A DNA stretch of 64,000 nt, taken from NCBI GenBank assembly GCA_964188305.1, contig OZ076889.1. One strand, written 5' to 3'. The DNA comes from Podarcis bocagei. Lineage: Eukaryota. The position numbers and the translations under genes are program-made. This document shows positions 6,080 to 49,469 of the stretch, piece by piece. The stretch's first letter is position 1, and every line of letters begins with the position of its first letter. Below the pieces are notes generated by a model. It ran no database searches and had not been told where the DNA came from. It saw nothing but the letters and a program-made list of their open reading frames with translations.

Positions 6080-7532
6080 TACTTAGTTGTTCAGTCCTCA
6101 GCCACTACGTTTTCAGCTTCGACCCTCTTCACAACTGTGACAATTAAGGCAGTAGACCTTAGAAAAGTTGGATTTTTCCAAGTCTGTACAGCCACACCTA
6201 GCTTTGAGATGGAGTGTCAGAGAACAGTTAGTCTTCCTTATTTTTTTTTAAAAAAACCACAACAGTATCTTCCCCACCTCCTTGCTCCATTTGTATCTGT
6301 AGACGGAATTCCAGAATGCCACACCTTGTCTGTTTCCCGTCTTTCCTTGTTACCTGTAACAAAAACAGAAGTGAATCTCTGCCAGGGGTGAATCTACACT
6401 GAGTCAGGCGGTGCTTAGCTGGAAACAGCCCAGTTCCATGAAACCGAAAGAGATTAGAGTAATTAAATCCAAGTGCAAATTTGCTAAACTGATACAAGCC
6501 TGAGATTTGGGATTCCTCAAAACGGATGTGAGTCAACCGCTGCCATTGTTCTCCAGTGAAATTTTGCTTTGGTATATGTGCAACAGTTAAGGGTGTCCCT
6601 GTGCCAGAGGACAAGGCTCCTGCACCTTTAAGTAGTTATACAGAGGAAGAAAATTCAGCAGGTGCAGCTGATCAGGAATCTGATGCCTCAAAGTAGTTCA
6701 CCTTGGGGCCAACTAGATGCAACTTAGTGTGTAAGTTTTTTGTTATATAAATAAGCAGCCACAAGGAAGCCTGAGCACCTTGGACCCTTGGGGTTAAAGA
6801 GTGTTGCTGTTGTTCTAAACCTACAGTATTTCTCTTCCTACCAGCGCTGCAAAAATCACTTCTCCAAACCTGCTATTTGCATTCCAAGGGAAATTCTCAT
6901 TGGGGCAATTGAATGTCATGTCTAGTTCAGTCCTTCACAGAATGGACAAACATGAAGACTAGCATATTACAATGCAGATGAAGCAATTATTAAATTGCAG
7001 AAATAATTTTTTTAAGGACCTTAAATACTGTTTATTAAAGTCATTAAAAGCACAAGAGAACAGGATGGGCTTGGGCTGGTACCTAAAAGATAGAAAATGA
7101 AGTGCTGGTGAATTTTAGGGAAGGAGCTTGGATGGATGCCACCACAGAAAAGGCCCTGTCTCCCACTGCTACTTGCTTAGCCTTCAAAGGGGGAAACCCC
7201 GGGAAGGGTCTCGAAAGCAGATCTCAGTTGGTGGCCAGGTTCATGTGGGAGAAGGCAGTTGAGTTCAGCTCCCATATATAGCAAGGATGGGGACTCCGTG
7301 ACCCTCCAGACATTGTTGGACTCCATCTCCCATCAGCCCCAGCCAGTGTGGCCAGTGGTCAAGTAGGAGGGCCACAGGTTCTCTAACTTTGCCCTAATAA
7401 ATGCAATCCGATCAGAGTAAATATGCAGAAGATCAGGCTGCATTTCCTGGGAGCTGGAGCATCTGGAATACCACATGTTCTGCTCTAGATGGAGGTGCCT
7501 GTTTTCTTATCCTCCTTGTTGCCCTTTTGCAG

Positions 7533-7668
7533 AAGACCAGGTGGCACAGCAGACAGAAGAGGTCTTCCAGAGCTATGTTTTCTATCGATACCAACAGGAG
7601 CAGGAGCAGACTGGGCAGGAAGCGCCAATAGATCCAGAAATAGCTGTGATGCAGCCGGAGCATGACAA
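7533..7668 (+). CDS. BAK1: BAK1 internal coding exon (136 nt; EDQVAQQTEEVFQSYVFYRYQQEQ...)
   Basis: Acceptor cttttgcag, donor AA|gtaaga. The peptide matches BAK helix alpha1. Confidence 0.96.
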
Positions 7669-7765
7669 GTAAGAGCACATATTTGAAACCTATACCCAAA
7701 ATACAAGCCGTATGCCAGTCTGCCTCCACAGGCATGTCTAACACGGTCATTCGTCTCTTGGGCAG

Positions 7766-7909
7766 CATCAACAACCAAGTGGGCAGGCGCCTGGCCACCA
7801 TAGGGGATGACATCAATGCACGGTATGACAGCGAGTTCTCTGAGATGCTGAAGTCACTGAAGCCCTCCAGGGACAATGCCTATGAGTACTTCATCAAAAT
7901 AGCCTCCAG
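7766..7909 (+). CDS. BAK1: BAK1 BH3 exon (144 nt; NQVGRRLATIGDDINARY...AYEYFIKIAS)
   Basis: BH3 motif LxxIGDDIN. ag/gt boundaries are in phase with neighbouring exons, and a 97-nt intron lies upstream. Confidence 0.97.
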
Positions 7910-10348
7910 GTAGGTCTCCCAGACTCTACTTCTCCCTCCCCAAAAAGTGAGAGGCTGGCTCAGTTTTCTGATATGAAGAGTTCTCAGATGTTGCTCTGTT
8001 AGGTTCCCTCATAAGAAGAGGGAGAAGATTGAGACAAATTTTGGGCTTGTTGCTTTAATGTAGTTTGCTTTGATTTTATTGATGTTGTTTTGGTTTTAAT
8101 TGAGATTGTTTTTTTTAAAAAAAATCTATTTAGTTAAATAAAAACATATACATCAATAACCTACAACAATAAAGAAATAAAGGACAACAGTATAACTGAA
8201 CAAAAATTAAACATACACAAGACGTATAGAGAGAGATTTGGGTCATTGCATTCACATTCTCTGGAAAAAGAATAATGATAATGATGGCAACAATTGGTGT
8301 TGGAGGACAGCAACTTTAAAAACGTACTTGTTTCATTTATAAATATCAGGCTATTGTCCTCCGGGTCTTACGATGTTCGTGCAGCTGAAAAGTTACTAAG
8401 AATTGCAAATAGTAGCATATTTCACAAAAGTCATTACAGAAAAGTGGGTGATTAAAACAGGGGAGTAAGTGTGGACTCGATATGTAACTGCAGTTTTTAG
8501 GAAGGGACTTTGTACCCATTTTTGGTCCTTATTAAGGAAAAAATGCTGCCACTACAAGGATTCCATCTTGACTGTCATTTTCTGACCCACACAGCTTTAA
8601 TTGCATGTTCACAGCAATTGTGTGATCAAGGTAGGAGGTTTTGCAGAAACTCTGCTCAAAGTAGTGAGCCAAACACCTGGACCCTCCCCATGCCATGTTG
8701 CAAAGTGAAGGGATCAACCCATTCCCTCTTGCCAAGTTCTTTCTAAACCAGCAGGCAGGTAGGGAAATTACCATAGGTGGTCTGGCAACAAGCAGCTTTG
8801 TTGCAGCCTAGAGCTTGTCCATGGTGGTCAGTTGCCAAAAGAAGGATTTGGGTCAGAGGTCTCCCTCATAATTCTCTTTCTGCTCCCTGACCCACAGCGC
8901 ATACATGCCTATAGACGGGTGCACCCATACTCGTTCCCTGTGAATGTTGTTTAACTGTCTCTTGTGTCCTCTCTTCCTGCTCTCCCCTCCTTGGGAAGCC
9001 AAGCAGCGTTGCTCTCACCCCTTTGCCACCTTGAGGTGGTCAGTGTACTGCAACCAGGTAAATTAACCTACAGTGCTTTCTCTTCCCTCTCTTTCAGTGA
9101 TGATGTGTGTGTGAACTCTCTCCATTCCATACTATGCCTGCTGAGATTTTTACAATGGCACACAAATCTTCAAGGTTATGCAACCTAATGAGACATGCTT
9201 CCATGTTTAAGTCTCATTTTGTCTTATAATTCTGGTTTTTTTAAAAAAAAAACCACAACAACCATCACAAAAATAATGATAATCCTGTTGTGATTTTTTT
9301 ATTATTCTGCCAGTCAGCCAAAGGGGTTCTCTGAGCAGCTAACAATCAAGTTGAAATGCATGTAAAATTCAGTTAAATATTAGCCAAGTTGACTGGCAAA
9401 CGTCTCTGAGCATCCTGCAAAAAGAGGTGGCATAGTTCTATAGATGGTGCCACCTCAGAAAAGGCCCTACTTCTTCCCCCTAAAGACTGTGGTACCTAGA
9501 GCAGAGCTATCCAGAAGATTTAAGTGCCAGAGCAGGCATCATATGGGATGTGTCTTGCTGTTTATGTGGATAGCAATTCTCAGCTTTCACAAGTCTTATT
9601 TTTCCCCTTTTCTTCTTGGATGCCAAAGGCATCCAAGTGTGCGCTGCTTTGCTTCTAGAGTGAACACTGTTTTCCTTCAACCATGTTGCTGGCCCTTGAA
9701 CACAGGGTCAGATTTATTTGCTGGGTTGTTCAACTGTAGATTATGGACATCTCCAGTGTAAATGGTGCCATGGGTTGCAACTGAGGATAGGATTTGCCAC
9801 AACCCATCACTTTTTGTGCTTTTCATTGCCACAGACCAGTGCTTGTACTTCGCAGTATGAACATAATGTGGTGTTGCAGCTGTACAAACAGAAGAAAATT
9901 TGTTTTCTGTTTAGATGAAATTACGTGACTGAGCCTTAACCCTGTTCCAATATGACTTTTGGAAGCAGATCTCCTTATATTCTTATTTTTATAATATTTA
10001 TTACTTACCCTTTGCCAGCAGGTCCCAAGGCAGGTTACAACAATCTAAAATTCGGAATTAAAACAGCTAAGGCAGTACAGGCTTGGCCTGTGCATTCAAG
10101 CAGAATTTAGGGGAGAGAGGTACCATTTGAAGCCACAGGTGGGGAGTACTATATTTGCGTGTTTGTGCTTTTAAGTGTAAATTTATTACAAAGTTGTTTC
10201 TTCATTTTTATTTGTATGAATATTAGTATATTTGTATGAATATTATATATATTTAAAAAGTCATCATCACCTGCAGTCTGAAATGACAGTCCATTCTGCC
10301 GTCTTGGGATGCTTCTACCTCTTTTTATTGCATGTTATAGAAGGAGCA

Positions 10349-10713: not shown

Positions 10714-11505
10714 TTATAGAAGGAGCACCTCTCCCAGTATCTCCCACCTCAAGTCTTACAATCTGTGGAGGAGGCCCTACTCCTGGTCCCACCTAACATG
10801 GTGACTTGGGGTAGGGCCTTCTCTACTGTGGCCTCCCAGCTGTGGATTGGCCACACATTTTCGTAGTCAAGTAAACGACTTCTTTGTTCTGTTAGGCGTT
10901 TGGGGAGGAGTGAGCTGAGAATTGTTCTTCATCGTGATTCTTAACTGTAAGATAGATGTTTTCATGGTCTCTGGTCCCCCCCGCCCAAATATATATTTGC
11001 TGTGTTGCTGTATTTATCATTTGCTGTACACAGCCCAGGGATCCCTTTATGATGAAGGGTAGATTAGAAACAGAATGAATGATTGCAGCCTCACTTCCAG
11101 AGGAGTTGCAGCCCGTGAGAAGCCCATGTGGCTGGCCTTCCGGGACGCACACTTCTCAGCTGTAGAAAAGTACCTGAATAGAAAGTATCTACATTTTAGT
11201 AATCTGTGTACATTTGGATTCTTGGGAGGAACAGCTTGAACAAGATCCAAGTGACTGAAGGCATATACACAGCCTTTTCCCCCCTTGACGATATAATAGT
11301 CTTGTTAAATATGCCTTGTGCCTTAGCACTGCTCAAGGGAAGACGCTAGCATGCTGTTGAATGGTGAGGGGGCAGGTCAGAAAGTTGCTTTTAATGCTAC
11401 AGCAGCAGACTGCGAACAAGCTGTGCCTCAGTAGAGGGTAGCAAAGGGCTGGCCATAAAACGTAGCCTGAATTTTCTAAGAATAATAATATGGTCTCTTC
11501 CGCAG

Positions 11506-11686
11506 TTTGTTTGAGAGTGGCATCAACTGGGGTCGTGTGATAGCACTGCTGGGCTTCGGCTACAGGATGGCAATCCATGTGTACCAGCAGGGGTTGACCG
11601 GCTTCCTAAGCAGGATCGCCCGCTACATGGCTGACTTTGTGCTTAGAAACCGCATTGCCCAGTGGATTGCCCAACAGGGAGGATGG
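11506..11686 (+). CDS. BAK1: BAK1 BH1/BH2 exon (181 nt; LFESGINWGRVIALLGFGY...WIAQQGGW)
   Basis: NWGR (BH1) and GGW (BH2) motifs. Acceptor cttccgcag, donor TGG|gtaagt. Confidence 0.97.
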
Positions 11687-12061
11687 GTAAGTGAACCGGA
11701 GAGCTGTCAAAGATGAGTGGGTTGGTTTTTTTAAAAACACACACACACATTTCTTTTACTATGAAAGTATGCTGGGACTGATCTGGGGTAGGCAGGAGTG
11801 GGCGCAGTAGGGCAGTGCCAGGCTGCTTCCCTCCCAACAGTGGAGTCATTGCTGTCTACTGAGAAGGTGTTGGGGGAGAGATCAGGGCTGTGCAGGGCCT
11901 TGGGGGTATGTGCCAGATCAACACTGCTGGTGCACCTTCCTGGCATCTAACTTTTCTTTCAGGGAGTGGGGAAATACATGCCAAGAAATTGCTGTGGTTA
12001 CCCTGGAATGGGTCCTCCCAACATTTCTGCAGGTAACAGTATTTTTTCCCTCCTCCTCTAG

Positions 12062-12169: not shown

Positions 12170-12805
12170 CCGGGAAGGAGAGTGTCACTGGCCGTTTGCA
12201 TCCCAGCCACTGACTCGCTCCTGGGAGGTGACACTTGTCAAGGAGGAGTCAGGAAACAACCAAAGGAAGCCAGATGGTTCTTTATCACCTTCCAATATGA
12301 CACCAGCTTATTAACCATCCACATGGAGATTTCAAACACAAGAAATCCACAGCATAGTATTTAAAAAGGTGGAACTGAGTATGGGAGAGGATTTATTACT
12401 TCAAGAGACCACTGGGGGGGGGGGGTTGAGAAAACAATAGGTTGGTTACATTCACAGTGTTGCCAGAGGAAAAGCCTCCCTGAAATCTCTTAAGGAGGAC
12501 AAGTCCTTTTCCAGAACGTTCTCAGGGCCAGCATAATCTCAGCTTTTGCAATTCCATTGCTAAAGAAAGCAGAAGGTCAAGCAGCATGCACAGCACTGTT
12601 GTTTGCTCAGTACAGCTGTCAATTCTTCCACTGCCTTATGCTTTTCTAGTGCTGAAAGAATCATGTGGCTGATTGGGAGATCATGTAGATTTGCTCCTGG
12701 GTTATCAGCATGAGTAGCACCTTCTAAGATCTGTAGATGTACACCTAGACAAAGCCTATCCCAGAAGGAGCGGCCGAGTGAGACAATGTCTAAAATATTT
12801 CATTA

Positions 12806-13038: not shown

Positions 13039-15719
13039 TATATGCAGACCTATTTGTCATCCACCAGATTATTTCCTTGATCAGGCATAGAGCTCATTAG
13101 TTGATCACTCTCTTTTAACTTAGTTGCAGTGATTCTTCTCTGTCAGTGGAGAGCGCCAGCCATTGCAGAAGTTATGAATACGCTTCTTTTCATGCAGTAG
13201 AGATCTCTTGGTTCCTTGCGTGCCAGCATTATTGCTGTCCAGCTTGACCAGGTAGTCTGTGTATGCAGTTTGGGAGGGGGGCAAAAAGTTGTTGAAGGAA
13301 TTGGGGAAGGCATTTTTTTTTGTTTGATTCCATTATAATTATTTACCCCTTTGACAATCACTAGCCCAAAGTTTCAATTCCCTTTGACGCAAATGGCGTC
13401 AAAAAGTCAGCACATGAATTGGTATCCCTAATGTAAGATAGGGATGGGGGACCTGTAGACCTCCAGATGTTATTGGACACAAACTCCCATCAGCCCCATA
13501 CAGCATGGGCAGTAGTCAGGGATGATGGGAGCTGTAAGGAGGGCCACAGGTTCTCTAATTTTGCCCTAATAAATGCAATCCGATCAGAGTAAATATGCAG
13601 AAGATCAGGCTGCATTTCCTACAGGTTTTAGTGTGAAAGTTGAGCATGTGCTTATGTCTCCCACTGAAATTGATGGGATTTGGAAGTGCACGATTGGAGC
13701 TGTCCTTGACTCCAAGCAAATGTGCAGAGCTGGAACTTGCCATTTGAAGGAGTTCTGGTTTTCAAAGTCCTTAGCTGCAGAGTCCTGCTTAGCTACAAAA
13801 AAATTACAACACTCCACCAACCTGTCCACATTGCTTACTTAACTCTTGTTTTATAGCTTTTAAACTAGGATAAAACTGCATTGACTGCAGTGAAGCCAAG
13901 ATTTTGAGCACAAAGGGTTCCTTTTCCTTGCTTTGCAGTTCCTCCCTTTACAAAGCTTACAAGGCAAAAGCTTACTTTGTAGCTTCTTTCATCTCTTTCT
14001 TGGTTTCCAAGAGCTCTTAAGACAAACACTTAGAAGCAATGTATGCATTTTCTGTACATTGTTTGTTTGCTTTTTTAAAAAAGTCACACCGCCTAGATTT
14101 CTTCTGAATGTGCATGCCAGCAATATTTGTTTTGTTTAAAATGTTTGATTTGGCTAACAATAATTTAACTTTGCCATGGCCTTAAGGTTTGTAATGGTTA
14201 TGTCTTGATGCATGCTGAACTTCATCCCTGCCCAATGCAATCTTACTTTTCTGAAGTCCCATTTTGTTTCCAGTGAACCTATAGTCTGACGACGAGCTGC
14301 ACATCTCATCATTCCTTACCGCTGGCTATGCTAAAACTGGGATTTGTCTGAGAACAGATCAGTAGGCTTCTGCTGTGTGTGTTTGTGTATCATACTAAAG
14401 TAGGAAAAGAATCTTTTTCAAAACAGCAGTTGTACAAAAAAAATCCATTGTACACTTATGTGGATCTAATCTACCAAGCCTATGGTAGCTTACTTCTAAG
14501 TAGATCTACAAAAGATTGCGAATCTAAGGTACTACTCATGGTGAAAATTGAAACGGGGGGTTTTATTTGTTTAGTTTATGCCAAACACTTTGATCTTTGG
14601 CACCACCCGCCATTGGCTCAGACTCTGCCCACTGCCAGTATATAGGCCCTGGGAGATTTCTCCCAAGGAAATGTGGCCCTTGGCAGGGAAGAAAGAAGAA
14701 GGTTGCTCATCCCTGCTGCATAGGTACACATCCTGCCACTCAGCTCAAGGGCTGGGTGGCAAACAATTTGAGTAAAAAAGCAAATCCAGGAGGCAGGGAG
14801 GCCCTGGTACTAGCTGATCCACACAGTGGCTGTCAACCACTGTGGATTTCACCAGCCAGAGTGTCCATGGAGATACAGAGATGGTAAAAGTTCTAGCAAC
14901 GAGAACTCGCGTACAGAGATTTGTGGCAGCAATGCATTTTCAACAAATAGCCATTTCTGCCAAAGAAGAGCCAAGTAAAATTGCGGGAGAAAAGGAATCT
15001 GTTGGGAAAGGGAATTGCTCCAATAAATCTTTGTATCGCTTTAGGAATTTTTGTTTCTACTGATGGAGAAATTATGTGTAGATCAAAAGGTTGCACCATT
15101 CTGAGTTGCTTCAAATTTAAACATGTCATGTCATATCTTCTGTCATTTCGGACCAGGCTAGCAACTGCTGTATAAGTGACTCAAATATTATATATGAATA
15201 CAGTGAATGCAGGTATGGCGTATGTAAACGACAAAGCTGCAGAAACACAGGCTAGGGTACTGGATGCAGAATTTAATTTCTTGAGAATCTCAGCATTGAT
15301 TCTTCTACAAAGTAAGCAAGAAGAATCTAAGCTCTTTTGACTGTGAAGATACATCTGAAATGATGGGCAATGCTGCTGAAATCTCAGAGGTGGCTAACCA
15401 AAATATCTAAAGACTAACAGTGGGGCACCAGTGACCTCCATAGCTTTTTCACCCCATGATTAGGAAAACCAGACTAACAAGACAATCTTAATCATGCCTA
15501 CTTTGAAGTAAATCCTATTGAATTCAGTGGGTCTCACTCCCCAGTAAATGGGATTAGGAGTGCGGTCTAAATTCTGCAAAATCAGCATTTGTGCAAGTTT
15601 GCCTGATTTATGCTGGATAAAGCATTTTAAATTTCAGAGCACGGAGTTCTGGGTAGAGGCAGAGGTCGGGCTTCACCAGCATCTTGGTTTGAGAAATGCT
15701 GCTTAAACGTTTGAAGAAC

Positions 15720-15915: not shown

Positions 15916-17142
15916 TTCCAAATGAACACCGTTTCTGGGGGCTGGTCAGTAGCATTTGACTGTCTCCTACCTAGCAATGAATTTCCTCCCCCCCACACAC
16001 ACACACACATATATTAAAGGCTTTAGCTAATATTCTGTCCAACTCATTTCTTCAAGGGTTTCCATCTTATAGTCTCCATCTGTGCCATAGAATTGGTTGC
16101 CCCTCTAGAGCATAGGAAACACTCCTGGTGACACTTGTGGCAGCTCTGGGTTTATAGCCATGAAATAGGTAGAGGCAATGCTTCTCCAAGTAGACTGCTC
16201 AGCAGTCTAAACTACATGAGCCATTGAGGAAATCTTTGGGGATGACAGTTAAGTTTTTACATACATACTTGAAGCCATAATGTAGCTATGAATCTGCTCC
16301 CTTTGTTCTGTATTGTATTTAAGAAGCTGCTTATTATTTTCCGTGCATCACACCCAGCTTTAACAGCCCCCTTGCCCTCAGGGATTCAAAGGGAATGAAG
16401 CTAATAATCCAGAGGTACCCAGGATATCAGTGCATCCAGCAGAATTGCTTTTCATTATCTTGCCTCCTTACCTGCAAGGCGATCGCTCGAAAAGTGAATC
16501 ACTGCTGGACGTGTGAATCGCTGGAGGAAGAAGAAAGAACGTCTTCCGGGGAAATAAATACAAACAGGGAAAGGGGCTGTCCTCTTCAAATCACATTGCT
16601 TAATGGCAATGTGGTGTGCATGGCAAGGAGTTTGGATAATTCCAGCTCTAAATGCAGATCCTGAATTGAGTGTTTATTGGAGGAAAAGAGTCTACAGCTC
16701 TCCTGCTGTACACACAGACTGCTTTGGGATTTGGAAAGATGCCCCTCTGTTTAATACAAGACAGACATCTAGCAGGGATTGTTGTTCTGGTCTCAAAAGG
16801 CCAAGAAAGACCTTCTATTGGATCTGGGTATATAAGGTTTCTTGCGTGTATCACATCATGCACCAAGCAAAAAACAATTGTGCCTTTCTACCTCCATCAA
16901 GATCTGACCCCTCCATGGGGGCATGGTGGTGCTACTACCTTTGGAGATACAGCGAAGGTGCGTCTTATAACACTCCCCAAATGAGCACTCCAGCATTCGT
17001 TGCGTGGGGTATTCATGGGGAATGCACTGGGTTGTTTTCCTGGAAAGCTATGCCTTCTATGTACTTCTGAATTGTGAAGTGCCTGGCACACTACTGGCAC
17101 TAAGTAAATGTTAAATGGTAGTTTCTGTAATATATATGTCAA

Positions 17143-17148
17143 AATAAA
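17143..17148 (+). terminator. Candidate distal polyadenylation signal (BAK1)
   Basis: AATAAA after an AT-rich stretch, with a GT/T-rich downstream element at about 17230-17260. Confidence 0.45.
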
Positions 17149-18406
17149 AGTTATATGCAAATACAGATGGTTTTAAGTTTATGTTATTTAAGTGTATGAA
17201 CATGAGCTCGAAATACAAGGTGTTTCCTTAATGTGTTTCTGTTTTTGTTTGTTGCTGTGGAGAGCTGTTTAGGAAGTGGCTTTGTTTTGATATTTTACGT
17301 TTTTTTAAAAGTGGATTTATGCTTCCAAAGCTGTGCCATCCCACTTACCGCATGAAGTTGTACAGTTTATAGAAGCCATCTTGGTTTTCCCTATAGCTTA
17401 CAGCTTATGGTTTGTCTGGGAGAGGGTTTGGACAACATTCTAAGTCAAGTATGTCTTCGCTCCGTGTGGCACAGCAGCAAAAGGAGTGCAATCTCTTTTC
17501 CGAGACCCTGCCGTTCACACCAGGTTATGGCTTGGCTTATGCAATGGAAGTGGATTCTGCACTCTGCACAGCTCCTCACTCCCCCCTCCAAAATCAGGCT
17601 CCTTAGAGTATATAAAGTGACAGGAAAGTGCACTGGAATAAGTAAGATAACAATTGTTTGATGTGATATAATATGACCTCTCTGCAAACAAATCAGGATG
17701 AATGCAAAATAAATAGACTGTCAGGAAACAGCCTGGGTATTAAGAACATTACCTGCAGTGTAGGATGAAAGACGGAGGCACGGAGATTCATCTCACCTCC
17801 TGCATTTCCTACGCTGGCAATCTAATAAACACAGACAATAAAAGGAAAGTGGAAGCTAAAAGCAATTAATGAAGACTGGAAAAGGCAACCGTCTTAAATA
17901 GCCATAAAAGCAGCATTGCCTACTTGCTGACAAAATCCCAGGCAAAAAAGGTAGGTTTAGGTTACGATTAATTCTAAGCACATTTGCCTAGGAGTAAGCT
18001 TCATTGAAATTAATAGGACATACTTCTGAGTAGATATGCATAGGATTGCATTTGTAGGAGTTTTGACTGGAAGCTGCCATGGCCATCCTTGTGAACAGTC
18101 AACCCAAATGTGATAAAAACACAAGGGCTGGTCAATTTCAAACTAATATTTGTATGTTTTTGTTGCACACTGGACCAAAAGGTCCTGGCAAGACACTATT
18201 GTTCTGCCTTACCCAACTATTTTTGTGTGCGTGTGGAATCTGCTGCCATTCCAAGGTAGGTAAGTTATTGACACAAATTATATCCCACCTTCCAGTAAAA
18301 TATCCAAAGTGGCTTATAGTCTGGATAAAAATACACAAGCTATAATAAAAACAAGCACAACAATATCAAATAACATCACCGAAATCGGTCACCTGATAAA
18401 AGTCAC

Positions 18407-18520
18407 CTGATTTTCATGCCACAGATGCCAAGTCTGGATGCCAGCTTGTGCCAGTCATTCCCACTAATGCTCTTTGCCTCTAACAGCAGCTGCAGCTGCT
18501 CAAAGAGCTCATGGAGGATT
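18407..18520 (-). pseudogene. UNC5CL: UNC5CL death-domain exon segment, open in frame
   Basis: 114 nt without a stop, ttccag acceptor-like site and CAG|gtgact donor. An in-frame TGA lies about 10 codons upstream of the acceptor-like site. Confidence 0.9.
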
Positions 18521-18964
18521 CTGGAACCCCCCAAAAATGCATCTCCATGTCATTCCAGACATCAACTAGCCATCCAACTGGATGTAAAGACCTTCGTTGC
18601 CTCTCCCTCTGGAGTTGTAGGCATCTGTTGTTCTGCACCCTTGACACTTTTTCCTGCCTGCTCCATCCTCACCAGTAGTTTCCACTTGATTTCACCGCTA
18701 ATCTTCCACAGGAAATCATTTCCCCAAATGCATACGTTTTGACCATTTTCAATCAGGCAATGGAGAAAATTTAGGCATACTCTTTAATGTAAGGATGGGG
18801 AATGTGTGGCCCTCCAGATATTGAGATTCAGCTTACATCAACCCCAGCCAACATGATCAATGGTCAATGGTGATGGAGTATTGTAATCCAGAAATATGGA
18901 GGGGGGCACAAATTCACCACCCTTGCTATAAAATGAAAGGGAAGTAGAGCTTTGTGGAAGGGCC

Positions 18965-19132
18965 ACCACTCTGGGTTGAGCATCCGCTTTGCATGCAGAT
19001 TCAATCCCCAGCATTTCTAAGGACGGCTAAGAGAGAATTAGTCTGAAACGCTGGATTGCCAGTTAGTGTAGACAACATTGAGCTAGATGCAAACATTGAG
19101 TTTGACTCAGTATAAGGCAAATTTCTATGTTC
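18965..19132 (+). mobile_element. Degenerate squamate SINE (Squam3-like)
   Basis: GAGCATCCGCTTTGCATGCAGA...TTCAATCCCCAGCAT...GTGTAGACAAC...CTCAGTATAAGGCA...CTATGTTCC. Related reverse copies near 32360-32530 and 36940-37100. Confidence 0.55.
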
Positions 19133-19237
19133 CAACATGACTTAAGAACTAGGCCCCGAGTTTAAAATTCCCAAATAAGTTTTCCATTTATGCATTTATA
19201 GAATTGTCATTACTGTTAATGCTCCTTATCTTAATAT

Positions 19238-19576
19238 AAGGTAAAGGGTAAAGGGCCCCTGGACAGTTAAGTCCCGTCAAAGGCGACTATAGGGTGTGGT
19301 GTTCATCTCGCTTTCAGGCTGAGGGAGCCAGCATTTGTCCACAGACAGCTTTCCGGCTCATGGCCAGCATGACTGAACCGCTTCTGGTGCAACGGAACAC
19401 CATATCAGAAACCAGAGCTCACAGAAACGCCATTTACCACTTGCACTAGTGTCCTTTGAACTGCTAGGTTGGCAGAAGCTGGGACAGAGCAATGGACAAT
19501 CACCCTGTTGCAGGATTTGAACCGCTGACCTTCTGATCAGCAAGCCCAAGAGGCTCAGTGGTTTAGACCGCAGCGC
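19238..19576 (-). mobile_element. Sauria SINE (older copy) inside the UNC5CL remnant
   Basis: AAGGTAAAGG tail, and body similar to the copies at 1681 and 10349. Confidence 0.85.
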
Positions 19577-20645
19577 AATACTGTATTTTAATATACCACC
19601 TGCCTTATCCGGAATGGCTGAGGATAGCTAGATGGCGTGGTCATATCTCACTGACCATATAAAGCAGGTTGTCGCTTTTCCGATTCTATGAAGGAAGAAC
19701 TGAGGCTGAATGAAAGAGGTCCAAACACGGCAGTCCAGGGCAGAGCTGGAATCTGAACAGAGAGACATATAGGAGCATGTGAAACTGACTGCTGGCCTAC
19801 TGGTTTCTGTAGGCCCACTAGGTCTCACATCATGTTGCTTCTGAGGGGTCAAAGGTAACAAAATGCATCCAAACAGAAAATTGTACATTCATTTAACCCC
19901 ATATCTAGTCATCGTGGTTACCAGGTGCTGGCCAAACAGTCCTGGCACTGTTACCTCCCTTATTCTGATGCATTTGTTGTTTTAGCTGGCTTTGCCTTGA
20001 ATCACCTGTGCCCCCCCCCATTCTGCTCCAGAGGGTCGCCCAGCCCTGTGGAGCAGGTTTTGTGCAGTTTTGGTGGGGTGAGGAAGTGCTGCTGCATGCG
20101 CAGGAGTCTGCTCACATCACATTGGATATTGCCCTTGACTATCTCTCCCTTCTAAGTGTTCCTGGCACCCTGGTATGCCAATGAGATGCAACTGCAGCCA
20201 AGCAGTGCCAGAGGAACAGCTGTCACTCGTGTCCCGGCCTTTTCATCGCATGAAAGCCCTTTCATTCTGTCTACAGACTTTATTTTATTTATTTATTCCC
20301 CTCCTTTCAAAACAATTCCAGTACAGAAGCAGACTAGGAAAGAGCTCAACTTATAAGGCTTGTTAAAAGAGGAACGTCTTTCGCAGGTGCTGGCAAGGGA
20401 GCAGAGATGGTACCTGTCTAACATTCAAGGGAAGGGAATGCCAAAGGGTAGATGCTACAACACCAAAGGCCTGATTCCTACACTGGGTGGAATGGACCTC
20501 CTGATAAGGTGGAGTCTGCAAGAGGCTCTCACAAGCATCCCAGAAAAATGGGACAATAATGGTTATTTCAACAATTCTAACGCTGTGGATACCAAGGATG
20601 CCTGCATCACTTGAGAAACCAGGTTAATCCACAGAGAAACAAGAG

Positions 20646-20695
20646 TGCACTGGTAACCCCCAGGTCCAACTTGCACTGGTAACCCCCAGGTCCAA
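20646..20695. repeat. Tandem duplication of a 24-nt unit
   Basis: TGCACTGGTAACCCCCAGGTCCAA occurs twice, separated by 2 nt. Confidence 0.9.
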
Positions 20696-23600
20696 TTCTA
20701 CTGAGTGTGCATTACATTGGCAGGTGGGGAGCAATGTGCTACTGTAACTTAAGCGGGATCATAGTCTATTCTTAACCTTCCTGTCTCATAGCAGGTTCAG
20801 CAGAGACCCATAAAAAGATACACACCAAGAATGCTACCAGCTGCACTTGCTCCTGCAGGATTCTCTCTCCCTCTTTGTTTAGTAGAAGGTTAAACATAAC
20901 AAAAGATAAATGGCCCTCATAAAAAGGGCAGCTGCTGTCTAACAATCCCCCTCCCACAAAAAGAGAGAGCCTTATAATGGTAGTTAACCAAACTTCTCAA
21001 TTGTAGTTATTAACTCCACAACAGCCAAGGTTAAGACCTAATTAAATTTTCACCGAAGGTAGCATTGGAGTGAAGGAATGTACTGTAAGTCCTGAAGCAG
21101 ACTTCACTGCTGCCTAATAGCTCCATAATGGGCCTAACACCAAATTAACCTAAGCCTCCTTCACCTAATCCCACAGGACATTTTTTTTAAAGCAGCTGTC
21201 CTGGGGGAGAAAGAGGCCCAAGGGGAAGGCATGTACCGTAATTGACTCTCATAGCCATGAGATATTTTGTAATGTTCTATTGGCTGCTTTGAGATTTTAA
21301 AAAAATAGAAATTGGTACCGAAATGACCAATACATTCATAACCAAAACAAAAATAAAACAGGATGGGGGCAGCCAGTGAGCTCAGGACAGAAAAAATGTG
21401 CCTCAGACTTTTCTAATCCTATATGCCCCAGTGTCTCTGCATCAATGTGTCTGAGGGTATTTCTACACAGTGGCAGCCTCTGGTCTTAGTGTATATATGT
21501 TTTTGCCCTAAGATGACATAGTAACTAAGGGAGACCCTGCTTCCCCATCCAAAGTAGTCACATCCTGGGAAGCGGAATTACCTGCCTCAACCAGCCTGTT
21601 TCCTGGTCTCAGCACCCCTATGTCATCTTTTTGTTTCCCCTTCCTCATCTGCCCCAGCCTGCCCACCCCACTCTTCAGCATAGTGACGCTTTGGGACTCA
21701 TGACACCTGCACTGGAGGAATTGGGAAGGTGTGGTCCTCCCAATGTTGTTGCACTCCTTCTTCCATTGTCCCTGACCACTGTCGATGCTGGCTTGAAGGG
21801 AGATGGAGTTCAACAATGTCTGGAGGGCCACAGGGTCTCCATCCTTGTTGTATATTCAAGGAAGGGGACACAGTGCTCTGGGTGCATGTGATTTTGCACA
21901 AGTAAGTTTACTGCTGTTTTTAATACATGCCCAGCATCATACTTAAATCAGCTCTAAGCAGTTACCCCTGAGATACGGATATATTTTATGACAGGCTGAA
22001 AGTCCAACTCCTGCTGTGCTTGCTACATGACCCATGGCACAAGGAGATCATTTTGTTCTGGAGGTCTTTGAAACCTTTGTCTTGCAAAGCCAAACTCAGA
22101 TCCTGGAAATGTGTGCCCCACACTTTAGAATTGGAGATCAGCACAACTTGTACTATTGTAGATGCAGCTTGTTCCCTTTGGGTCTGGTCCAGTTTGCATA
22201 ATGAGAATCAGATTTCTCTAATGTCCTGGGGACCAGGTTGCCATTATATATCCAAATAACACCAATGATGCACATATGTAGCAAACACTTATCTGACAAC
22301 CGAGAAGGGAGCTAACAAAAGGGAGTGCATCCTTCCTTCATCACAACATTCTCCTATGGCCTTAGTAAATAAACTGGGTTTCTCATTAACTTCACAGTTT
22401 GCTCTTTCCAGTTTGCATTTAATACAGTAGCAACTGCTTCCCTAGATACCCAGGTGCACACTGTCTTAACAGTCAGGCAGAAAGAAGCATTAAGATTACA
22501 GCCCTACAGTGTGATTTCCATTACCAAAGCAATTCTACTATGAAAGTGTCTGCTGTGGACACTGCAATCTTGGCTCTGGAGTAAATTTGCGCGACTGGAG
22601 CATTGGGATCTGGTTGAGTCTGGTCTAGCCAAGCAGATAACTTCAGGTGGGTTCACAGAAGAATGTGCAAATACCAGGTCTCCCTGTTATTATTATTATT
22701 ATTTTCATATTCATATTCATTATTATTATTTTCATATTTCATACTTGGGAGAACCATCTATACCAAACAATGGATCACATGTGCTCCTTCGTACGACATG
22801 AGAATAGCCATAACAAGTGCAGATTCCCACCAACACACTTGGGACACTGCACCTTGCAAGGAGAATCAGGACTGAACCAGCAATGTTGTCCTAAATTCCT
22901 TCTGTGTTGGTTCTATATGCCTTTTCTTTTCCCCCTCCCTGATCTCTTAGAGTAAATACATTCAATAAAAACACATGTAATTAATGTCTGGGTCAATAGC
23001 TGGTCTAAGAAGTACTTGGGGCTCCAGATTTCTCCTAGGCCAACACCGCAGACAAATTTTGGATGTAGCAGAACTGTTATTTGTCATCCAATCTTCACAT
23101 CAGTTCTTCCTTGCTTATTGTCAAACAAGGAAGAATATTAAGTACTCCGTTGCAAAGATCTCAAGAGCCTTTGCTCTTCTGTCTCAAGAAGTTGAAAACA
23201 CAAGTGAGCTATTCCCAAAGGCCCTATGAAGAAAATTGCTTTGGGATAAATAGTCCATAGTCAGTGACTATCTATGCTGAAGAACATAAAGTATCTCTGC
23301 TCCCTGTGTTGTTGAAGCAAATGCTCATTCACATCTAATTCCAGCTTCCCATACCTAAAACACTCAGCAGAACGGCTCACTATCTCTTACAGCAGGTGGC
23401 AATAATGACAGCAAGAAGATAAGACTAAAGGAGGAGGCTTGCTGAAGGTGTCCTGCCCAAAGCTGATCTCACAGACTGTAGTAATACTTCTTAGTTATAG
23501 TTTGCTTGCTCAAGCTCTTTGCTGCAACAGGCATTGTACTGACATCCAGATGCCCATTCTTGGATTAATGCATTTCATTTGCTACTTTGAAGGGACAGCT

Positions 23601-24799
23601 GCATGCAGAAAGTTAACGGCACTTACAGAAAGCTCTGCACAATCACACCAGCTCACATCTGCTCCTTAGCACAAATGTCTCCCACCAAATAATTTTCTTT
23701 AGCACCATTTGAGTGCAATAAAACATAACACTAATTATGTGCAACAGCAATAATATTAAATTCCATCTGGACACATCAGCCTTGTTTCAAGGCATAAAAA
23801 ATTAGATAACTATCTATAGCCAAAGCGAATGAGTCTTTAATGCTCTCTGTGTTGCAGGCAAGCCGCTAATGGAAATGGATGTCTAGCTTTTATTTGCATT
23901 TAGCATGCATCTGTAATGTTGCTGTTATTTATTCAAGTGGCTTATGCTAACTTTGGCAGAGAGGTGCTCCCAAGTGCATATGGCTAATGAAGGTTGCACA
24001 GCAAAGAGCATCAGTAATTAAACAGCAAACACAACAGCTCAGATGCTTCTGCACCAAGGGTTTCAATACTCAAAAGGCCTGTTTCAAATGCATGGGAAGG
24101 GAACTGGGGAAGACCAGAGCATTCAAAGAGATTTGTAGACATCATCTTGGCTGGTAAGCTTTGCAATACGAATTTGGCCCTTTGAGGACCACCGGATGCC
24201 CAGCAGCTAACCCAGAGGGATGAGAGATGAGTGGAGGGAGTTGACAGTGGTACAAGGTTAGGCTAGCAGCTCTCTTTGGTGTACAGCAGGAGGGTGGGGA
24301 ACCCGAGGGTCGCATTTCCTCCAGTGAAACCTTCCACACGCCATTGGTGGGAAGGGCCAGAGGCAAATGTGAGCAGAGCAACAATGTAAATGTTACTGTT
24401 GTACAGGACGCTAGGTTCTATCCTCCATCTAGATGAGCAATAAGCATTATCAGAGTTCAAGGACATATTCCAGCCAGTCAAAAACCGGGGGTGCAAAGAA
24501 GGGCTGGTAAGGAGTGTGGTGCAGAAGATGGCCTGGGGACAGGTTATAATGGGGCCTGAGGTTCACTATTCCTGGTGTGCAGCCTGGGAGCTGACTCACC
24601 ACCTCATCCTCTTCTTAAGAATCTCCTTCACCAAGGTTTTACAACAACCCTGGAAGGTAGGACACTACTATCACCACCATATTCTGGGTGAGGACTGAGC
24701 AATGGCCTGCCCAAGGCCCTTCGACGAGTTGATTGTGGCAGATGGGATTTTTTTTAAAGGAGAAGCTTCCTGGTTCAGCTCTGAATCTCTTCTAGGAAC

Positions 24800-25540
24800 T
24801 GCACCAGCTCGTCAGCCTGGCCTGGCTCCGCAAGCCGTTCAGCCCAACTCTGACGGGTGACTGGCCTCGGAGAAGGGTCGCTGCTGTACCCCGCCCTCTG
24901 CAGCCTGTTACACAAACGGTGCGCCGCCGGGGAGAGAGCGAGAGCGATCTCCTCCTCTCTCCTTATCGTATTTGCACGCTGCAGTCCCTGTTGTGTAACC
25001 CGACCCACACAGGCTCTTCGCAAAGGCGACGCCTCGCCCCGGCTCTCTCCCTCCCGCTTCTTGGGCACAGCGAGAGCTCGAGAGAGGCTGAAGCCCATTG
25101 GCTCGCTCCTCGCGTCCGCCCTGGCAAGACGGTGAAGTTCCGCTCCGGGAAGGTAAGGGAAACAAAAGGCGGCGCGTGGGGGGCGCCCGAGCCGCGCAAC
25201 TTTGCCAGGGTGGTCGCGTTCTGTTGCAAAGCGGGACGTTCCATCCGCTCGGACAACGGAATGCCTCTCAAAGAAGCAACACGGGCGCAATGGCTCCCCA
25301 CCCCCAGCACACACACAGCATGCAGCCAATTAAGCCACGCTGGGCTGCGTCGAGGCGGAAGGTCAAGCCAAGCCACCTCTCCGTCTTTCTAGAAACGTTA
25401 ACAGCAAAGACCCCTGTGTCACCCTGAAGCGTGACCAACCGAACGGCCCTTGGATTGTGGCGGGAGAGCTTTCCTGCGCGACTCTAGTCCGCGAAAGCTT
25501 GTATCATATGCCGTCTGTGCAAAGCGTTTTCGCAGGCTGC
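24800..25540. promoter_or_regulatory. CpG island; probable TSPO2 promoter with non-coding exon 1 (donor at 25152/25153)
   Basis: Dense CpG against a CpG-depleted background. Inverted CCAAT near 25097. Consensus donor AAG|gtaagg at 25152. Confidence 0.75.
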
Positions 25541-26817
25541 AGCAGCAGGGCTCTCTTGCTGTTGCTGGGTTTTTTAAAAAAAATATTACTGTAATTCTAG
25601 AAATGTACAATGATCCTCCCTACAGTGTTACCTATTCTCCTCATCTGTTCATCATAGTGTAACAAATTGAGACTATGAATACGTATTAGAACTTCAGAAT
25701 GGGAATCAAGATTCCTGTTGTCTGTGGAGCTGGAAGTAATTTTTTTACAAAACAAAACTGAAAACAGGAAATACTTCAGTCAAAAAACATCTTGCATATG
25801 GGGAATTCCCAATGGAATTAAATGAAGCGATCAAAAATAACTTGTTTATTCCACCTATCTTTAACAGAGCATTCAGGCTGCAGGGCGTGTGAAATAATTT
25901 TTTCCTGATCTCCAATAAAGGCAAACAGTATCAGAATTTTCTGTTTGATAAGAAATCTGATCCTCAGCAAACTCTAGTTTAACACCAGGCTCTCAATGGG
26001 ACTAAAAAGTCTTTAGCTATAATCCTATAACTACTTGAAATGAATGGGACATACTTCAGGGGGTGGGGAAGCACACTAAATCTGTTTTCTGATCATTATC
26101 CCTGACTGCTTACTAGAGAATCTGCTGTCTGGTACACAGTTGTTAAGTGTAATTATGTAGGTAAGGGTTTGCCAAATGAAAAAATAAAGCATGAGAATTG
26201 CTTTGCCTTAAATAAAGCTTGAGTGGCTGTCTGGCAAGGATGCTGTAGTCACAATCTGCACTGCACATCCTGCATTGAACAGTGAGTTGAGACTTGATGG
26301 CCTCTAAGGTCCCTTCCAATTCTATGATCAAGGCCTATCTACTACAGCATCTTGTCCCCTACAGCAGATGATGAGCATCCCCTATTCTTTGTCTCCAACA
26401 TCCCATAAGCAAGACATATATGCTAGTTCTGAACATGAAGCTTCTAATGGGTGATAAGTGGCCTACCTGAAGAACAGCAGCAGACTGCTAAGGGGAGATA
26501 AATTTGCCAAATTAGATTGCCATGGTCTTAACAGCATTCTTGATACAGTAAAATGGCTTACTTTAACTTTAAAATGCTAATAACAGCATCCTCGAAGGAA
26601 AGATCACTGGAAAAGGAGCATCTGCATCTGTCCCTCATTTTAACCAACACAAGAAAAAAGATCTTTGCTTTATTTCCTTTAACCTACAGAAGGAAACACA
26701 TCTCAAGTTGAGAGTAAGTACCTCCCAATGTGAAAATAACTAATGGTGTACAATTACCAATTTTCAGTTTCAAAGGCACAGGCGCAATCCGTATTTGCTA
26801 GAACTGTCTGGCTGAGG

Positions 26818-26990
26818 ATGTGGGTCCACGCTCTTGGCTTCACAGCCTTGCCCCATCTTGGTGGATTCCTGGGCTGGTTCTTCACTCGGAAGGAAGTGCC
26901 CACGTGGTTTGAAGATCTGAAGAAACCGTCATGGCGTCCACCCAATAAAATGTTCCCAGTTGCTTGGACGACACTGTATACAAGCATGGG
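26818..26990 (+). CDS. TSPO2: TSPO2 first coding exon (MWVHALGFTALPHLGG...KPSWRPP...LYTSMG)
   Basis: TspO/MBR motifs KPSWxPP and LYTSMG. Good Kozak context AGGATG, donor GG|gtaagg. TSPO2 rather than TSPO is assigned from synteny with APOBEC2-OARD1-NFYA. Confidence 0.9.
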
Positions 26991-27279
26991 GTAAGGCTTC
27001 CTGGGCAAGGCTCCAGTCCTAAGCACATGCTAGAAAGCAAGCCCAACTGAATTCAGTGGAACTCAGGTCCAAGAAAAAATACATGGGATCAGACTGACAG
27101 CAATTCCATTTGCCTCTGCTGCTTCTATTGTAGCCTTTGTAGCAACTAGTTGGCTGATTTCCTCTTCGCGATGGGTTTTTCCAGTTAGTCACACTCAACA
27201 TAGATCCATGGAATAGACACAACTCACTCAGGTACCTTCATTTCAGTGGGTTTTAGTTGGGTGCTACCTGTTGCAATTA

Positions 27280-28343: not shown

Positions 28344-28650
28344 TACAGAATTTTGGCTTTAGGTGCGATCCCCAGAATGTAACCCCTATGTAAGTTGCAG
28401 GCTTTCTGTAGTGAAATTCTAGCTATATTGATAAACTAAGTGCTTGTGCAGCGGCACCATAGATTTGTTATGTCTTATCTTTGAGATTTCTACTGAAAAA
28501 GCTTCAAAGGTACTAAGCTATCATCTAAGCTGCATTTCACTGGTGTTAAGGCTTACACGGGAAGGGTTGCTCAGAGTAGTAATCCTACTGAAGCAAAGCT
28601 GATAATGGGGCATTCAAAAGCAAAGCATTGTCTGGTTTTATTTTCTGCAG

Positions 28651-28789
28651 GTATGCTTCATATTTGGTGTGGAAGGACCTTGATGGCTTCAACAGTCAAG
28701 CAGTTGTCCCACTGGGCCTCTATGGAGCTCAGCTTGCACTGAACTGGGCATGGACTCCTATATTCTTTGGAGCTCACAACCTAAAGCTG
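28651..28789 (+). CDS. TSPO2: TSPO2 coding exon 2 (YASYLVWK...[20 protein letters not shown])
   Basis: 139 nt, ttttctgcag / CTG|gtaatg. Carries the conserved LNWAWxPIFFG motif. Confidence 0.93.
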
Positions 28790-30473
28790 GTAATGTATCC
28801 CAAACATTTGCTGTACCATTATGTTGCCTGTATTGCAGTTACCTTTTTGGGACCTCCAATGAGGCTGACTAGGAAACTGCTGGGCTAAAATTGTTCAGTG
28901 GAATGTGCAGACTCTTTAAAAAAAATCCTCTAGCAGGCATGTTTATGTAAACGCACACAATATTTCTGGGCCTCAAAATATACTGAGTTTCTGCTAGAAA
29001 TGTCAAAACTAGTCCAGAGTGAGGCTTTCAGTTGTTGAGCCAGTGGGACACAGTGCTTCAAATGTTAGACCAGAACTGTGGAGAAACCCACTCTGCCATG
29101 AAGCTCACTGAGTGAACTTGGGCCAGTCATAAGCTCTCATCTTAAGCTACCTCACAGGGTTGTTGTGGAGAGAAAATAGGGGCAAAGTTCCCTGTAAGAA
29201 AAACAGGATATAAATGTAACAAACAAACTAGAACTACTTCCTTTACGGTTTTGTTCTTTGCTCTCTCTGGCCCCAAGCCCTTGATTTTCTGTCCATGTTC
29301 CCAAAGGGTAAAGCAGAAAAAGAGGGCAAAACAACCTGCTACAGAACAAAGCAGGCAGATAGGTTAATGTGTTTTAGTGGCTATTAAAGTTCCCTGGGCA
29401 CACAATACATGAGTCTTCAAGTGAGGTCTTCCATAATGTTTGTAGCTGGCATTTAGTTACAAGAGCAAGGAGAATTTGATGAACTGGGGCAAAAGGCTTG
29501 CATGGCTTGTATCCACTTTGTAGCTGGCTCCTGCCAGTGATATCAGCCCCTTGCAGTTCTCTTTACTGCCTTCAAAATTAAAGCAGCTGGCTGCCTCGAA
29601 AAGGGTGTGAAGCTAGCACCGTTATGATCGGGGTGATCCATATTTTTCAGTTGAGAATGGTGTGTCTTGAGATAAGCAGCTCTGAGCACCACACCTTGAC
29701 CTAATCAGCAAGCAAAGGCCAGAGCTTCAGTGCGCTCATTATTCATATGTGCCTTATTAAACTGTAAAATGCCAAAGTGTTAATAAGAGAATATGTATGA
29801 TAGGAGTTGTTTGGATTAGCACATTTAGACACTTAGCGCTGCATTAGAGATGAAGAAAAGGAGAGCCTGGAATGTTCAGATGGCTAAATTCCAGCCTCTA
29901 GGGAACTGAGAAAGAATGCCAACATTTATAAGCACAGATGGAAGTGACAATACAACTTGGAAAATTTGGTAATAAGGGTAATAACTCTTATCCTGCTCTG
30001 GTAAAGGGAATATGGCCCACCCAGCCCCATCCTATGCTCTGCTGTCTACTGGCACAATAGCATAATATCTGGTGAAAGGATTCTATAGTTGACACCTGGG
30101 AAAACCTTGCTCTAACACTATGAGCTGGATCCACCCTGTGCACTGAGCTAGCCGCCATCACTACCACTAGTGCCTGCTAACTAAAAGCTGCTGTCCCGAT
30201 TCCTGCATTGTGCAAAGATCTTTGCAAGGGAGGCAGGGAAATGAGGGGACCAGCAACTTGTTCCAGTTGCCAATGGAGCAATGCTTCCACTGACAAAAAG
30301 CTCTGGCATGAAAAGCCTGATAGGTATATGGGAGCAGATGGGGCAGTCCTGGAGTGCTCAGCCACTTGCTTTGTGTAGGATCATTCTCAGCCTTGTGGTA
30401 AAAGAAGAGACTGCGTCTTTTGCATTCTGTCCAGTGTGTCAATCATTTAGACATTGCTATTTCTCTTTTCCAG

Positions 30474-30653
30474 GCCCTGATCGACATTGTGGCTCTTTAT
30501 GGGTTAGTGCTGGGCACGATGTATTCCTGGTACCCTATTAACAAAACAGCAACACTGCTGATGCTGCCTTACCTTGCCTGGCTGACCTTAGCTTCTTCTC
30601 TTACCTACCGTATCTGGAAAGACAATCCTGAAAAGGGAAAGAAGAAAGAATAA
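30474..30653 (+). CDS. TSPO2: TSPO2 last coding exon (ALIDI...PYLAWLTLASSLTYRIWKDNPEKGKKKE*)
   Basis: Acceptor ttttccag, PYLAW and CRAC-like motifs. The three exons total 492 nt, or 163 aa. Confidence 0.93.
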   Translation, partial: ALIDIVALYGLVLGTMYSWYPINKTATLLMLPYLAWLTLASSLTYRIWKDNPEKGKKKE

Positions 30654-43977: not shown

Positions 43978-44125
43978 GCCTGGGTAGCTCAGCTGGTTAG
44001 AGCTTGGTGCTGATACCGCCAAGGTTGCAGGTTTGATCCCCGTATGGGACAGCTGCACACCCCTGCATTGCAGGGATTTGGACTAGATGATCCTCAGGAT
44101 TCCTTCCAACTCTACAATTCTATTA
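43978..44125 (+). mobile_element. tRNA(Ile)-derived SINE with CR1-like 3' tail
   Basis: Head TAGCTCAGCTGGTTAGAGC...GGTTTGATCCC (A and B boxes) is joined directly to a CR1-type tail GGACTAGATGATCCTC...CCTTCCAACTCTACAATTCTA. Confidence 0.8.
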
Positions 44126-48800: not shown

Positions 48801-49469
48801 TAAAAAGGTCAGAGAAGGTTCTTTCTTAGAGGTACAAATCTCACTATGGGGTGGAGGGAGAGAAGAAAATATGTACTGGGATTAAGTGCTAACTTGTGTG
48901 CATTACACCAAGAGTAATTCAAGATGAGGCATCTTGGATACAAGAAAGGAGCTAGAAAAGTAAAGGAAGAAGCGAAAAATCTTAATAACCAGTAGATTTA
49001 AATGAATATAGAAAAATGGAGCAGGCAAGTGAATAGCTCACTAATAGTTTGTAGATACTTACTTTCAAATCATTTTAAAACCACAAAAGGGAAAATTAGC
49101 TTGTGTATATCAGCAACAGATTACTTGAAAAACAGCTGATGCAAACACAACCTGCCCTCTAAGCTGGAAACATCTGACGACTTATTTCCTCCAACTTTTC
49201 CCCAATTCCAATAGCAACTCCCTTGTGGTTATACCAAAGTTTTTTCACCAACTTCTACCATAAACCTCCAAATTACTTGAACATGGAATTAAATACTGTA
49301 TCTTCAGGAAATTTAGTCATTGCCCAATTCTTCTATGTCTCAGGCCTTAAAGGGAATAGCATGGTTACAAAATTACCTTAACACCACCAATAACTGAAAT
49401 TAATGGATGAAGGAGGTTGTGTGTTATTAGGTGTGTAACACTGAGGCTTTCTTTCACTCTTTTATACAG

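Follow-up and report, generated by a model that had tools for sequence, protein, structure and literature searches.

In mammalian epithelia, the death-domain adaptor UNC5CL (ZUD) has been connected with NF-kB and JNK signalling. In the lizard Podarcis bocagei, a stretch of 64 kilobases (kb) of contig OZ076889.1, hereafter the window, very probably holds the orthologous UNC5CL locus, in the interval between BAK1 and TSPO2, with the gene dead there. Only two leftovers can be demonstrated: exon 6, whose open frame, flanked by both splice sites, encodes the first death-domain helices, and a non-coding element of intron 4. Deletions and repeat turnover, and not point mutation alone, most likely removed the exons for the N-terminus, the ZU5 and UPA domains and the remaining half of the death domain. 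The window contains no N, so that nothing is concealed by assembly gaps, and no ZU5-UPA-death-domain protein is encodable from the lizard locus. The two pieces are:

18407-18520, minus strand: UNC5CL exon 6 relic, 114 nucleotides (nt), stop-free, found by tblastn, blastn, profile and Pfam
20871-20936, minus strand: single-copy 66-nt element, orthologous to the UNC5CL intron-4 block of alligator and turtle, found by blast

The exon structure taken from the alligator locus (L003) assigns amino acids (aa) 1-128 to exon 1 (E1), 129-234 to E2, 235-322 to E3, 323-355 to E4, 356-404 to E5, 405-447 to E6 and 448-556 to E7. In tblastn with alligator UNC5CL (P0014, 556 aa), positions 18406-18525 match aa 406-445 with an E value of 5.6e-14, and blastn of exon 6 shows 82.7% identity over 127 nt to alligator L003 18104-18229 (E 8e-30). 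In length (114 nt), phase and splice sites the relic agrees with alligator exon 6, and 93 of the 114 nt are identical (82%), as are 31 of 40 residues at the protein level; DNA identity to the turtle exon is 79.5%. The similarity to alligator ends at the exon borders, where the AG acceptor (18522-18521) and the GT donor (18406-18405) are kept, with flanks TTCCAG and GTGACT. In a frameshift-tolerant profile search exon 6 scores 149.5, in relation to at most about 34 elsewhere in the window. The death-domain block of the original prediction, which had proposed a hidden UNC5CL unitary pseudogene in this interval, is thus beyond chance by tblastn, blastn and profile.

According to Pfam, the stop-free stretch 18406-18549 on the minus strand matches Death with an E value of 4.2e-4 and 20.8 bits (cut-off 22.6), over profile positions 2-33 of 86. 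With this stretch as query, a hidden Markov model (HMM) search of 1.8 billion representative proteins matched nothing but UNC5CL proteins or parts of them. The exon 6 open reading frame (ORF), looked up as an exact sequence in public assemblies in order to find transcripts, gave no match, and a homology search with the 48-residue exon 6 piece as query gave zero candidates, which is uninformative. A complete death domain (exons 6 and 7) was not found, exon 6 being present and exon 7 absent between the anchors described below. Directly upstream of the exon 6 acceptor, about 40 nt (18530-18567, TGGAATGACATGGAGATGCATTT) are conserved between the lizard and a skink, and not in alligator or turtle; the letters MEM, previously read as part of the protein, come from this intronic stretch.

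The remaining exons were sought with a weighted profile built from 36 vertebrate UNC5CL proteins. The profile of each exon was aligned locally to both strands of the 64 kb, with frameshifts allowed and stops charged, and reversed sequences were used as controls. Exons 1-5 and 7 gave nothing above the controls anywhere in the gap-free 64 kb; this holds for the ZU5 exons (E2 and E3) and for the UPA exons including the GWEN exon (E3 and E4), which stay at noise level. The same method recovered all seven exons of alligator (scores 82-388), E2 and E4-E7 of turtle (scores 73-338), and a badly broken E7 of the skink (55.8, in relation to a noise of about 24). In simulations, almost all exons were still found after decay by 0.2 substitutions per site; at 0.4 the share fell to between roughly one half and three quarters, with E5 nearly always missed, and from 0.6 upwards hardly any were recovered. 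Furthermore, plain tblastn with UNC5CL of Polypterus, shark, turtle, alligator, tuatara, coelacanth and platypus (E up to 100) gave exon 6 as the only significant match, with no surplus of matches on the minus strand of the region. Six of the seven coding exons cannot be detected, although the window is free of gaps, and the coding capacity of the ancestral locus has been destroyed. The lizard and alligator loci have in common the place beside BAK1, exon 6 and the intron-4 element; they differ in that neither ZU5 nor UPA nor the latter half of the death domain has any detectable sequence in the lizard.

Two short matches were considered as possible relics of other exons. The first is:

22111-22137, minus strand: SPILKCGAH, the best candidate for a ZU5 relic, borderline, with a profile score of 34.2 against the conserved SPVVYCGPH

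This candidate, which differs from the E2 block proposed earlier, gave a P of 0.05 within the anchor-bounded interval 20937-23690, is not significant after testing of four exons, and shows stops on both sides. The second came from an exon-by-exon DNA search with the alligator exons in anchor-bounded intervals, which gave one seed, 19 of 21 to E3, at 24513-24533, with a shuffle P of 0.004-0.009 in relation to the tuatara peptide. The E3-like seed (24513-24535) was rejected as a likely chance match: it extends neither in protein nor in DNA, its profile P is 0.13, and it lies outside the turtle-anchored interval, upstream of the block that precedes exon 2 in turtle.

The interval is identified by gene order and by conserved non-coding anchors. 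In the flatback turtle Natator depressus (L004) the order is TSPO(-), UNC5CL(+), Bcl-2(-), and in alligator (L003) UNC5CL(+) is tail-to-tail with a Bcl-2 gene (BAK1). On the basis of both, the 14.7-kb gap between BAK1 and TSPO2, minus strand, is the expected place of UNC5CL in the window. TSPO2 was sought in the 10 kb upstream of alligator UNC5CL and not found there, therefore the head-to-head arrangement of TSPO2 and UNC5CL is established for turtle only. The collinear chain with turtle and alligator is formed by the TSPO2 exons, 24891-24917, 23690-23964, 20871-20936, exon 6, 17120-17151, 16257-16289 and the BAK1 exons. The BAK1 and TSPO-family neighbours and these anchors put the interval at the orthologous genomic position of UNC5CL. 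Besides the intron-4 element, the anchors are:

24891-24917, minus strand: short anchor upstream of TSPO2, 92.6% over 27 nt to turtle L004 6486-6512
23690-23964, minus strand: TSPO2-side non-coding blocks, matching turtle L004 7117-7336 (66% over 224 nt) and 7371-7404 (85% over 34 nt)
16772-17180, minus strand: conserved block lying towards BAK1, downstream of the relic, with 67.5% identity over 440 nt to skink L002 2114-2546
16257-16289, minus strand: short anchor in the stretch from UNC5CL to BAK1, with an identity of 88% over 34 nt to turtle L004 21823-21856 and of 96% over 25 nt to alligator L003 22597-22621

The turtle counterparts of 23690-23964 lie between TSPO2 and UNC5CL exon 2, and their position sets an upper bound for the location of exons 1-4; according to the anchor chain, these exons could lie only in 20937-23690. 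This interval measures 2.75 kb, while its counterpart has 5.9 kb in alligator and 7.3 kb in turtle; in the lizard it is partly occupied by a repeat resembling a short interspersed element (SINE) at about 21511-21855 and by a microsatellite at 22688-22743. The microsatellite and interspersed repeats reported earlier for the locus are real. The shortened interval, together with the missing exon 7 between conserved anchors, is what points to deletion.

Turtle block 7117-7404 was rejected as exon 1, no E1 signal being present there. Blocks 23690-23964 and 24891-24917, the latter in a G+C-richer stretch (24-26 kb, GC 0.51), have no counterpart in the 10 kb that precede alligator UNC5CL; they are probably promoter or enhancer elements of TSPO2. 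Within 16772-17180, positions 17120-17151 share 87.5% identity with alligator L003 22227-22258, which lies some 1.1 kb beyond the stop codon of the alligator gene; the block is possibly a remnant of the 3' untranslated region or intergenic sequence.

The intron-4 element shows 77.6% identity over 67 nt to alligator L003 15938-16004 and 84% over 63 nt to turtle L004 14732-14794 (E 2e-12), and the three-way alignment of alligator, turtle and lizard has 56 invariant columns. In both outgroups it sits in intron 4, between exon 4 and exon 5. It is single-copy, conserved across distant lineages and collinear in position: no second copy was found in the window or in the compared loci, and no Rfam family matches it. 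Its core resembles what we take to be an HNF1-type palindrome flanked by E-boxes. The element has stayed conserved in turtle and lizard although UNC5CL is broken in both, so that it most likely acts for another, neighbouring gene and would probably have survived by regulating it.

A second squamate shows the same locus in a different state of decay. Among the fragments matched in the HMM search, P0010 belongs to a Logan contig of 3.5 kb (L002) from run SRR31508491, which consists of PacBio HiFi reads of the skink Prasinohaema aff. flavipes (PMC12400806). The contig is collinear with window 18567-16772, and its exon 6 (about 481-594), as in the lizard, shows an open frame and both splice sites. 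About 1 kb past exon 6, at about 1565-1745, the skink has an exon 7 relic that is 78% identical to alligator, with the acceptor CAG changed to CAC and four frame-breaking indels (+1, -10, -1 and +1). Because of the lost exon 7 acceptor and these indels, UNC5CL is a true pseudogene in the skink. While the skink retains a recognisable exon 7, the lizard window shows none: between anchors 17810 and 17190 nothing is alignable to it, and the lizard exon 7 has been deleted or replaced. On the other hand, exon 6 is more decayed in the skink, with 18 derived changes compared to seven in the lizard.

The changes in exon 6 were polarised with alligator and turtle as outgroups:

Window lineage: 7 derived changes (1, 2 and 4 at the first, second and third codon positions)
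Skink: 18 derived changes (6, 6 and 6)
Common to both squamates: 6 changes (2, 1 and 3)

The asymmetry between window and skink has a binomial P of 0.04, the window being about 2.6 times slower. The codon-position pattern of the skink is neutral, and the window counts are too few to judge. The simplest account of the locus is deletions, proposed because of the shortened intervals and the missing exon 7, combined with a slower rate or a later inactivation in the lizard lineage.

Several points weigh against the death of the gene as the explanation of the locus. The sole recognisable exon has no stop, frameshift or splice-site lesion, so that the case rests on missing exons and not on a visible disabling mutation. 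Exon 6 is preserved much better than expected if it had decayed neutrally like the rest, which leaves room for constraint or late loss. The lack of entries in protein databases carries weight only as far as annotation and a word-based, length-filtered search allow. Finally, the evidence for loss covers the 64-kb window and consists of sequence.

The preservation of exon 6 also allows another explanation, which we regard as unlikely: that the exon was kept under selection after the death of the gene, either as an exon of a short or non-coding transcript, perhaps from the promoter shared on the TSPO2 side, or as a regulatory element at the DNA level. Its open frame and two splice sites, its score of 149.5 in relation to a median of 89 for simulated neutral decay at 0.2 substitutions per site, and the low number and codon distribution of its changes compared to the skink agree with such a role, and the intron-4 element shows that non-coding constraint exists in the locus. 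In a joint form, to which we give an equally low probability, the intron-4 element would be an enhancer for TSPO2, BAK1 or APOBEC2 and exon 6 an exapted exon or exonic regulatory element; selection on both pieces would explain an open, splice-competent and slower exon 6 while the other exons vanished. However, half a death domain is no folding unit, and exon 7 is absent. Read-through of the exon 6 donor meets a stop immediately, the polypyrimidine tract is broken by six G, and the invariant Pro of the LLEP motif is changed to Ala in both squamates (window lizard and skink). Seven changes are too few for a test of nonsynonymous against synonymous rates (dN/dS), and the asymmetry is accounted for just as well if the lizard lineage mutates more slowly or was inactivated later.

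Less probable still is the full five-block model of the original prediction, in which remnants of ZU5, UPA, the GWEN exon and exons 6 and 7, with stops and frameshifts, would be spread over 17800-22852. The quoted peptide letters are present in the sequence, scattered over different frames, and weak residue matches can be read by eye; furthermore, the E2 and E3 blocks lie inside 20937-23690 in the correct order. Each block was scored by the fraction of equal-size control intervals that score as high. Apart from the death domain, all are at chance level: 0.19 for E2 (22500-22870) and 0.95 for E3 (21030-21290), both read within 21034-22852 and compatible with the anchors in order and position; 0.51 for the E4 GWEN block (20770-20900, read at 20870-20777); 0.85 for the LE/MEM block (18527-18720); and 0.11 for the E7 or last-exon block (17780-17960). 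The best ZU5 candidate is a different 9-residue motif (22111-22137), itself borderline. Among the pieces proposed, only the death-domain piece matched in Pfam, and tblastn at E up to 100 misses the others.

Two of these blocks are also misplaced in relation to the conserved anchors. The intron-4 element is preceded by exon 4 in both alligator (14443-14544, with the element at 15938) and turtle (12532-12645, with the element at 14732), but the E4 block follows it, on the 3' side. The E7 block (17940-17800) aligns at about 72-74% to skink L002 980-1075, which lies about 500 nt upstream of the skink exon 7 relic; it is thus intron 6 and not exon 7. The collinear remnant map does not hold, with four blocks at chance and two of them misplaced, and the hand-aligned peptide remnants beyond the one conserved exon were over-read. 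Outside the death-domain block no significant collinear alignment was found for coding sequence, an outcome named in advance as decisive against a pseudogene; the pseudogene call survives because of synteny and the collinear non-coding anchors, which carry it. What stands of the unitary pseudogene is an orthologous locus without intact UNC5CL, with one exon and one intron element left, a relic that ORF-based annotation would miss, as had been claimed.

That UNC5CL is still functional, elsewhere in the genome or too diverged or misassembled at this place, is the least probable explanation: the examination covered 64 kb and profile sensitivity drops beyond about 0.4-0.6 substitutions per site, but the exons for ZU5 and the death domain show strong conservation between sharks and mammals so that a functional copy would be visible, the window has no gaps, the protein searches gave no squamate UNC5CL except the skink ORF fragment, and the skink copy at the same locus is frameshifted.

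The distribution of UNC5CL proteins agrees with loss of the gene at the lizard locus. Searches of 5.8 billion protein clusters with Polypterus and alligator queries gave mammals, crocodilians, coelacanth, ray-finned fishes and a shark, as well as a partial tuatara model and turtle models that are partial or labelled 'LOW QUALITY'. Full-length proteins with ZU5, UPA and Death according to Pfam were found in alligator, mammals, coelacanth, Polypterus, sturgeons and a shark; the ortholog is thus intact in outgroups, where its function is assumed. No squamate or bird UNC5CL was found among the 5.8 billion clusters, a search with a length filter and dependent on annotation, and the HMM search of the 1.8 billion representatives gave no squamate UNC5CL of any length except the skink ORF fragment. 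The absence of a bird protein hints that birds may lack UNC5CL too. A loss specific to this lizard, as first proposed, does not fit with the frameshifted relic of the same gene in the skink, nor with the absence of squamate proteins from the cluster searches. Because of these two observations the loss is probably old and squamate-wide and not special to the lizard; the inactivation would probably be common in kind to lizard and skink.

The locus of Natator depressus shares with the lizard the order TSPO, UNC5CL, BAK1, a broken gene and the conserved intron-4 element. In turtle (L004 9700-20300) E1 and E3 are not detectable and exon 6 has lost both splice sites (acceptor AG to AA, donor GT to AT); unlike the lizard, it retains E2, E4, E5, E6 and E7 at 70-80% identity to alligator. 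The RefSeq models of UNC5CL in sea turtles are labelled 'LOW QUALITY' or are partial, those of Caretta and Eretmochelys being 'LOW QUALITY PROTEIN' models. The erosion in sea turtles looks independent and younger, and sea turtles appear to be losing UNC5CL on their own. In the tuatara model (P0060), E1-E3 and E7 are good, E4 and E5 are replaced by unrelated sequence, and no more than half of exon 6 is present; the cause is either a poor model or assembly, or an erosion that has started in tuatara as well.

Segmental deletion has been described as a cause of gene losses in squamates (Salve, Sonal and Vijay, BMC Biol 2026, PMC13005343). As in those losses, a conserved immune-related gene is missing here and deletions are implicated; unlike a clean segmental deletion, the lizard locus keeps a relic exon and intact flanking synteny. 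UNC5CL is not mentioned in the main text of that paper, and no paper was found in the literature that ties UNC5CL to pseudogenes or reptiles or reports its loss in squamates. The case is a unitary pseudogene of the ordinary sort, apparently not reported before, and adds one example to a well-known type of event. If the loss is squamate-wide, UNC5CL would be one more among the immune-related genes missing from squamates.

The neighbouring genes in the window are:

7650-7910 and 11489-11713, plus strand: BAK1 (Bcl-2 family) exons, by Pfam
26740-26991, 28592-28885 and 30402-30650, plus strand: exons of a TSPO-family gene (TSPO2; TspO/MBR), by Pfam
49411-50007, plus strand: APOBEC2, by Pfam
near 58 kb, minus strand: OARD1-like ORF, recognised by eye, with no match in Pfam

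Pfam thus bears out the BAK1 and TSPO2 neighbourhood that had been proposed, and APOBEC2 with it, and the BAK1 exon at 11489-11713 shows 85% protein identity to the gene that adjoins alligator UNC5CL. A block in a BAK1 intron (8948-9106) and alligator L003 29510-29659 share 72.5% identity over 160 nt, and this conservation is real. Further along the window, Rfam gave a transfer RNA (tRNA) match of 32.4 bits at 43978-44051 on the plus strand, and the adjacent 44062-44128 is 76% identical to turtle L004 25868-25937. The match probably marks a tRNA-derived SINE and not a tRNA gene.

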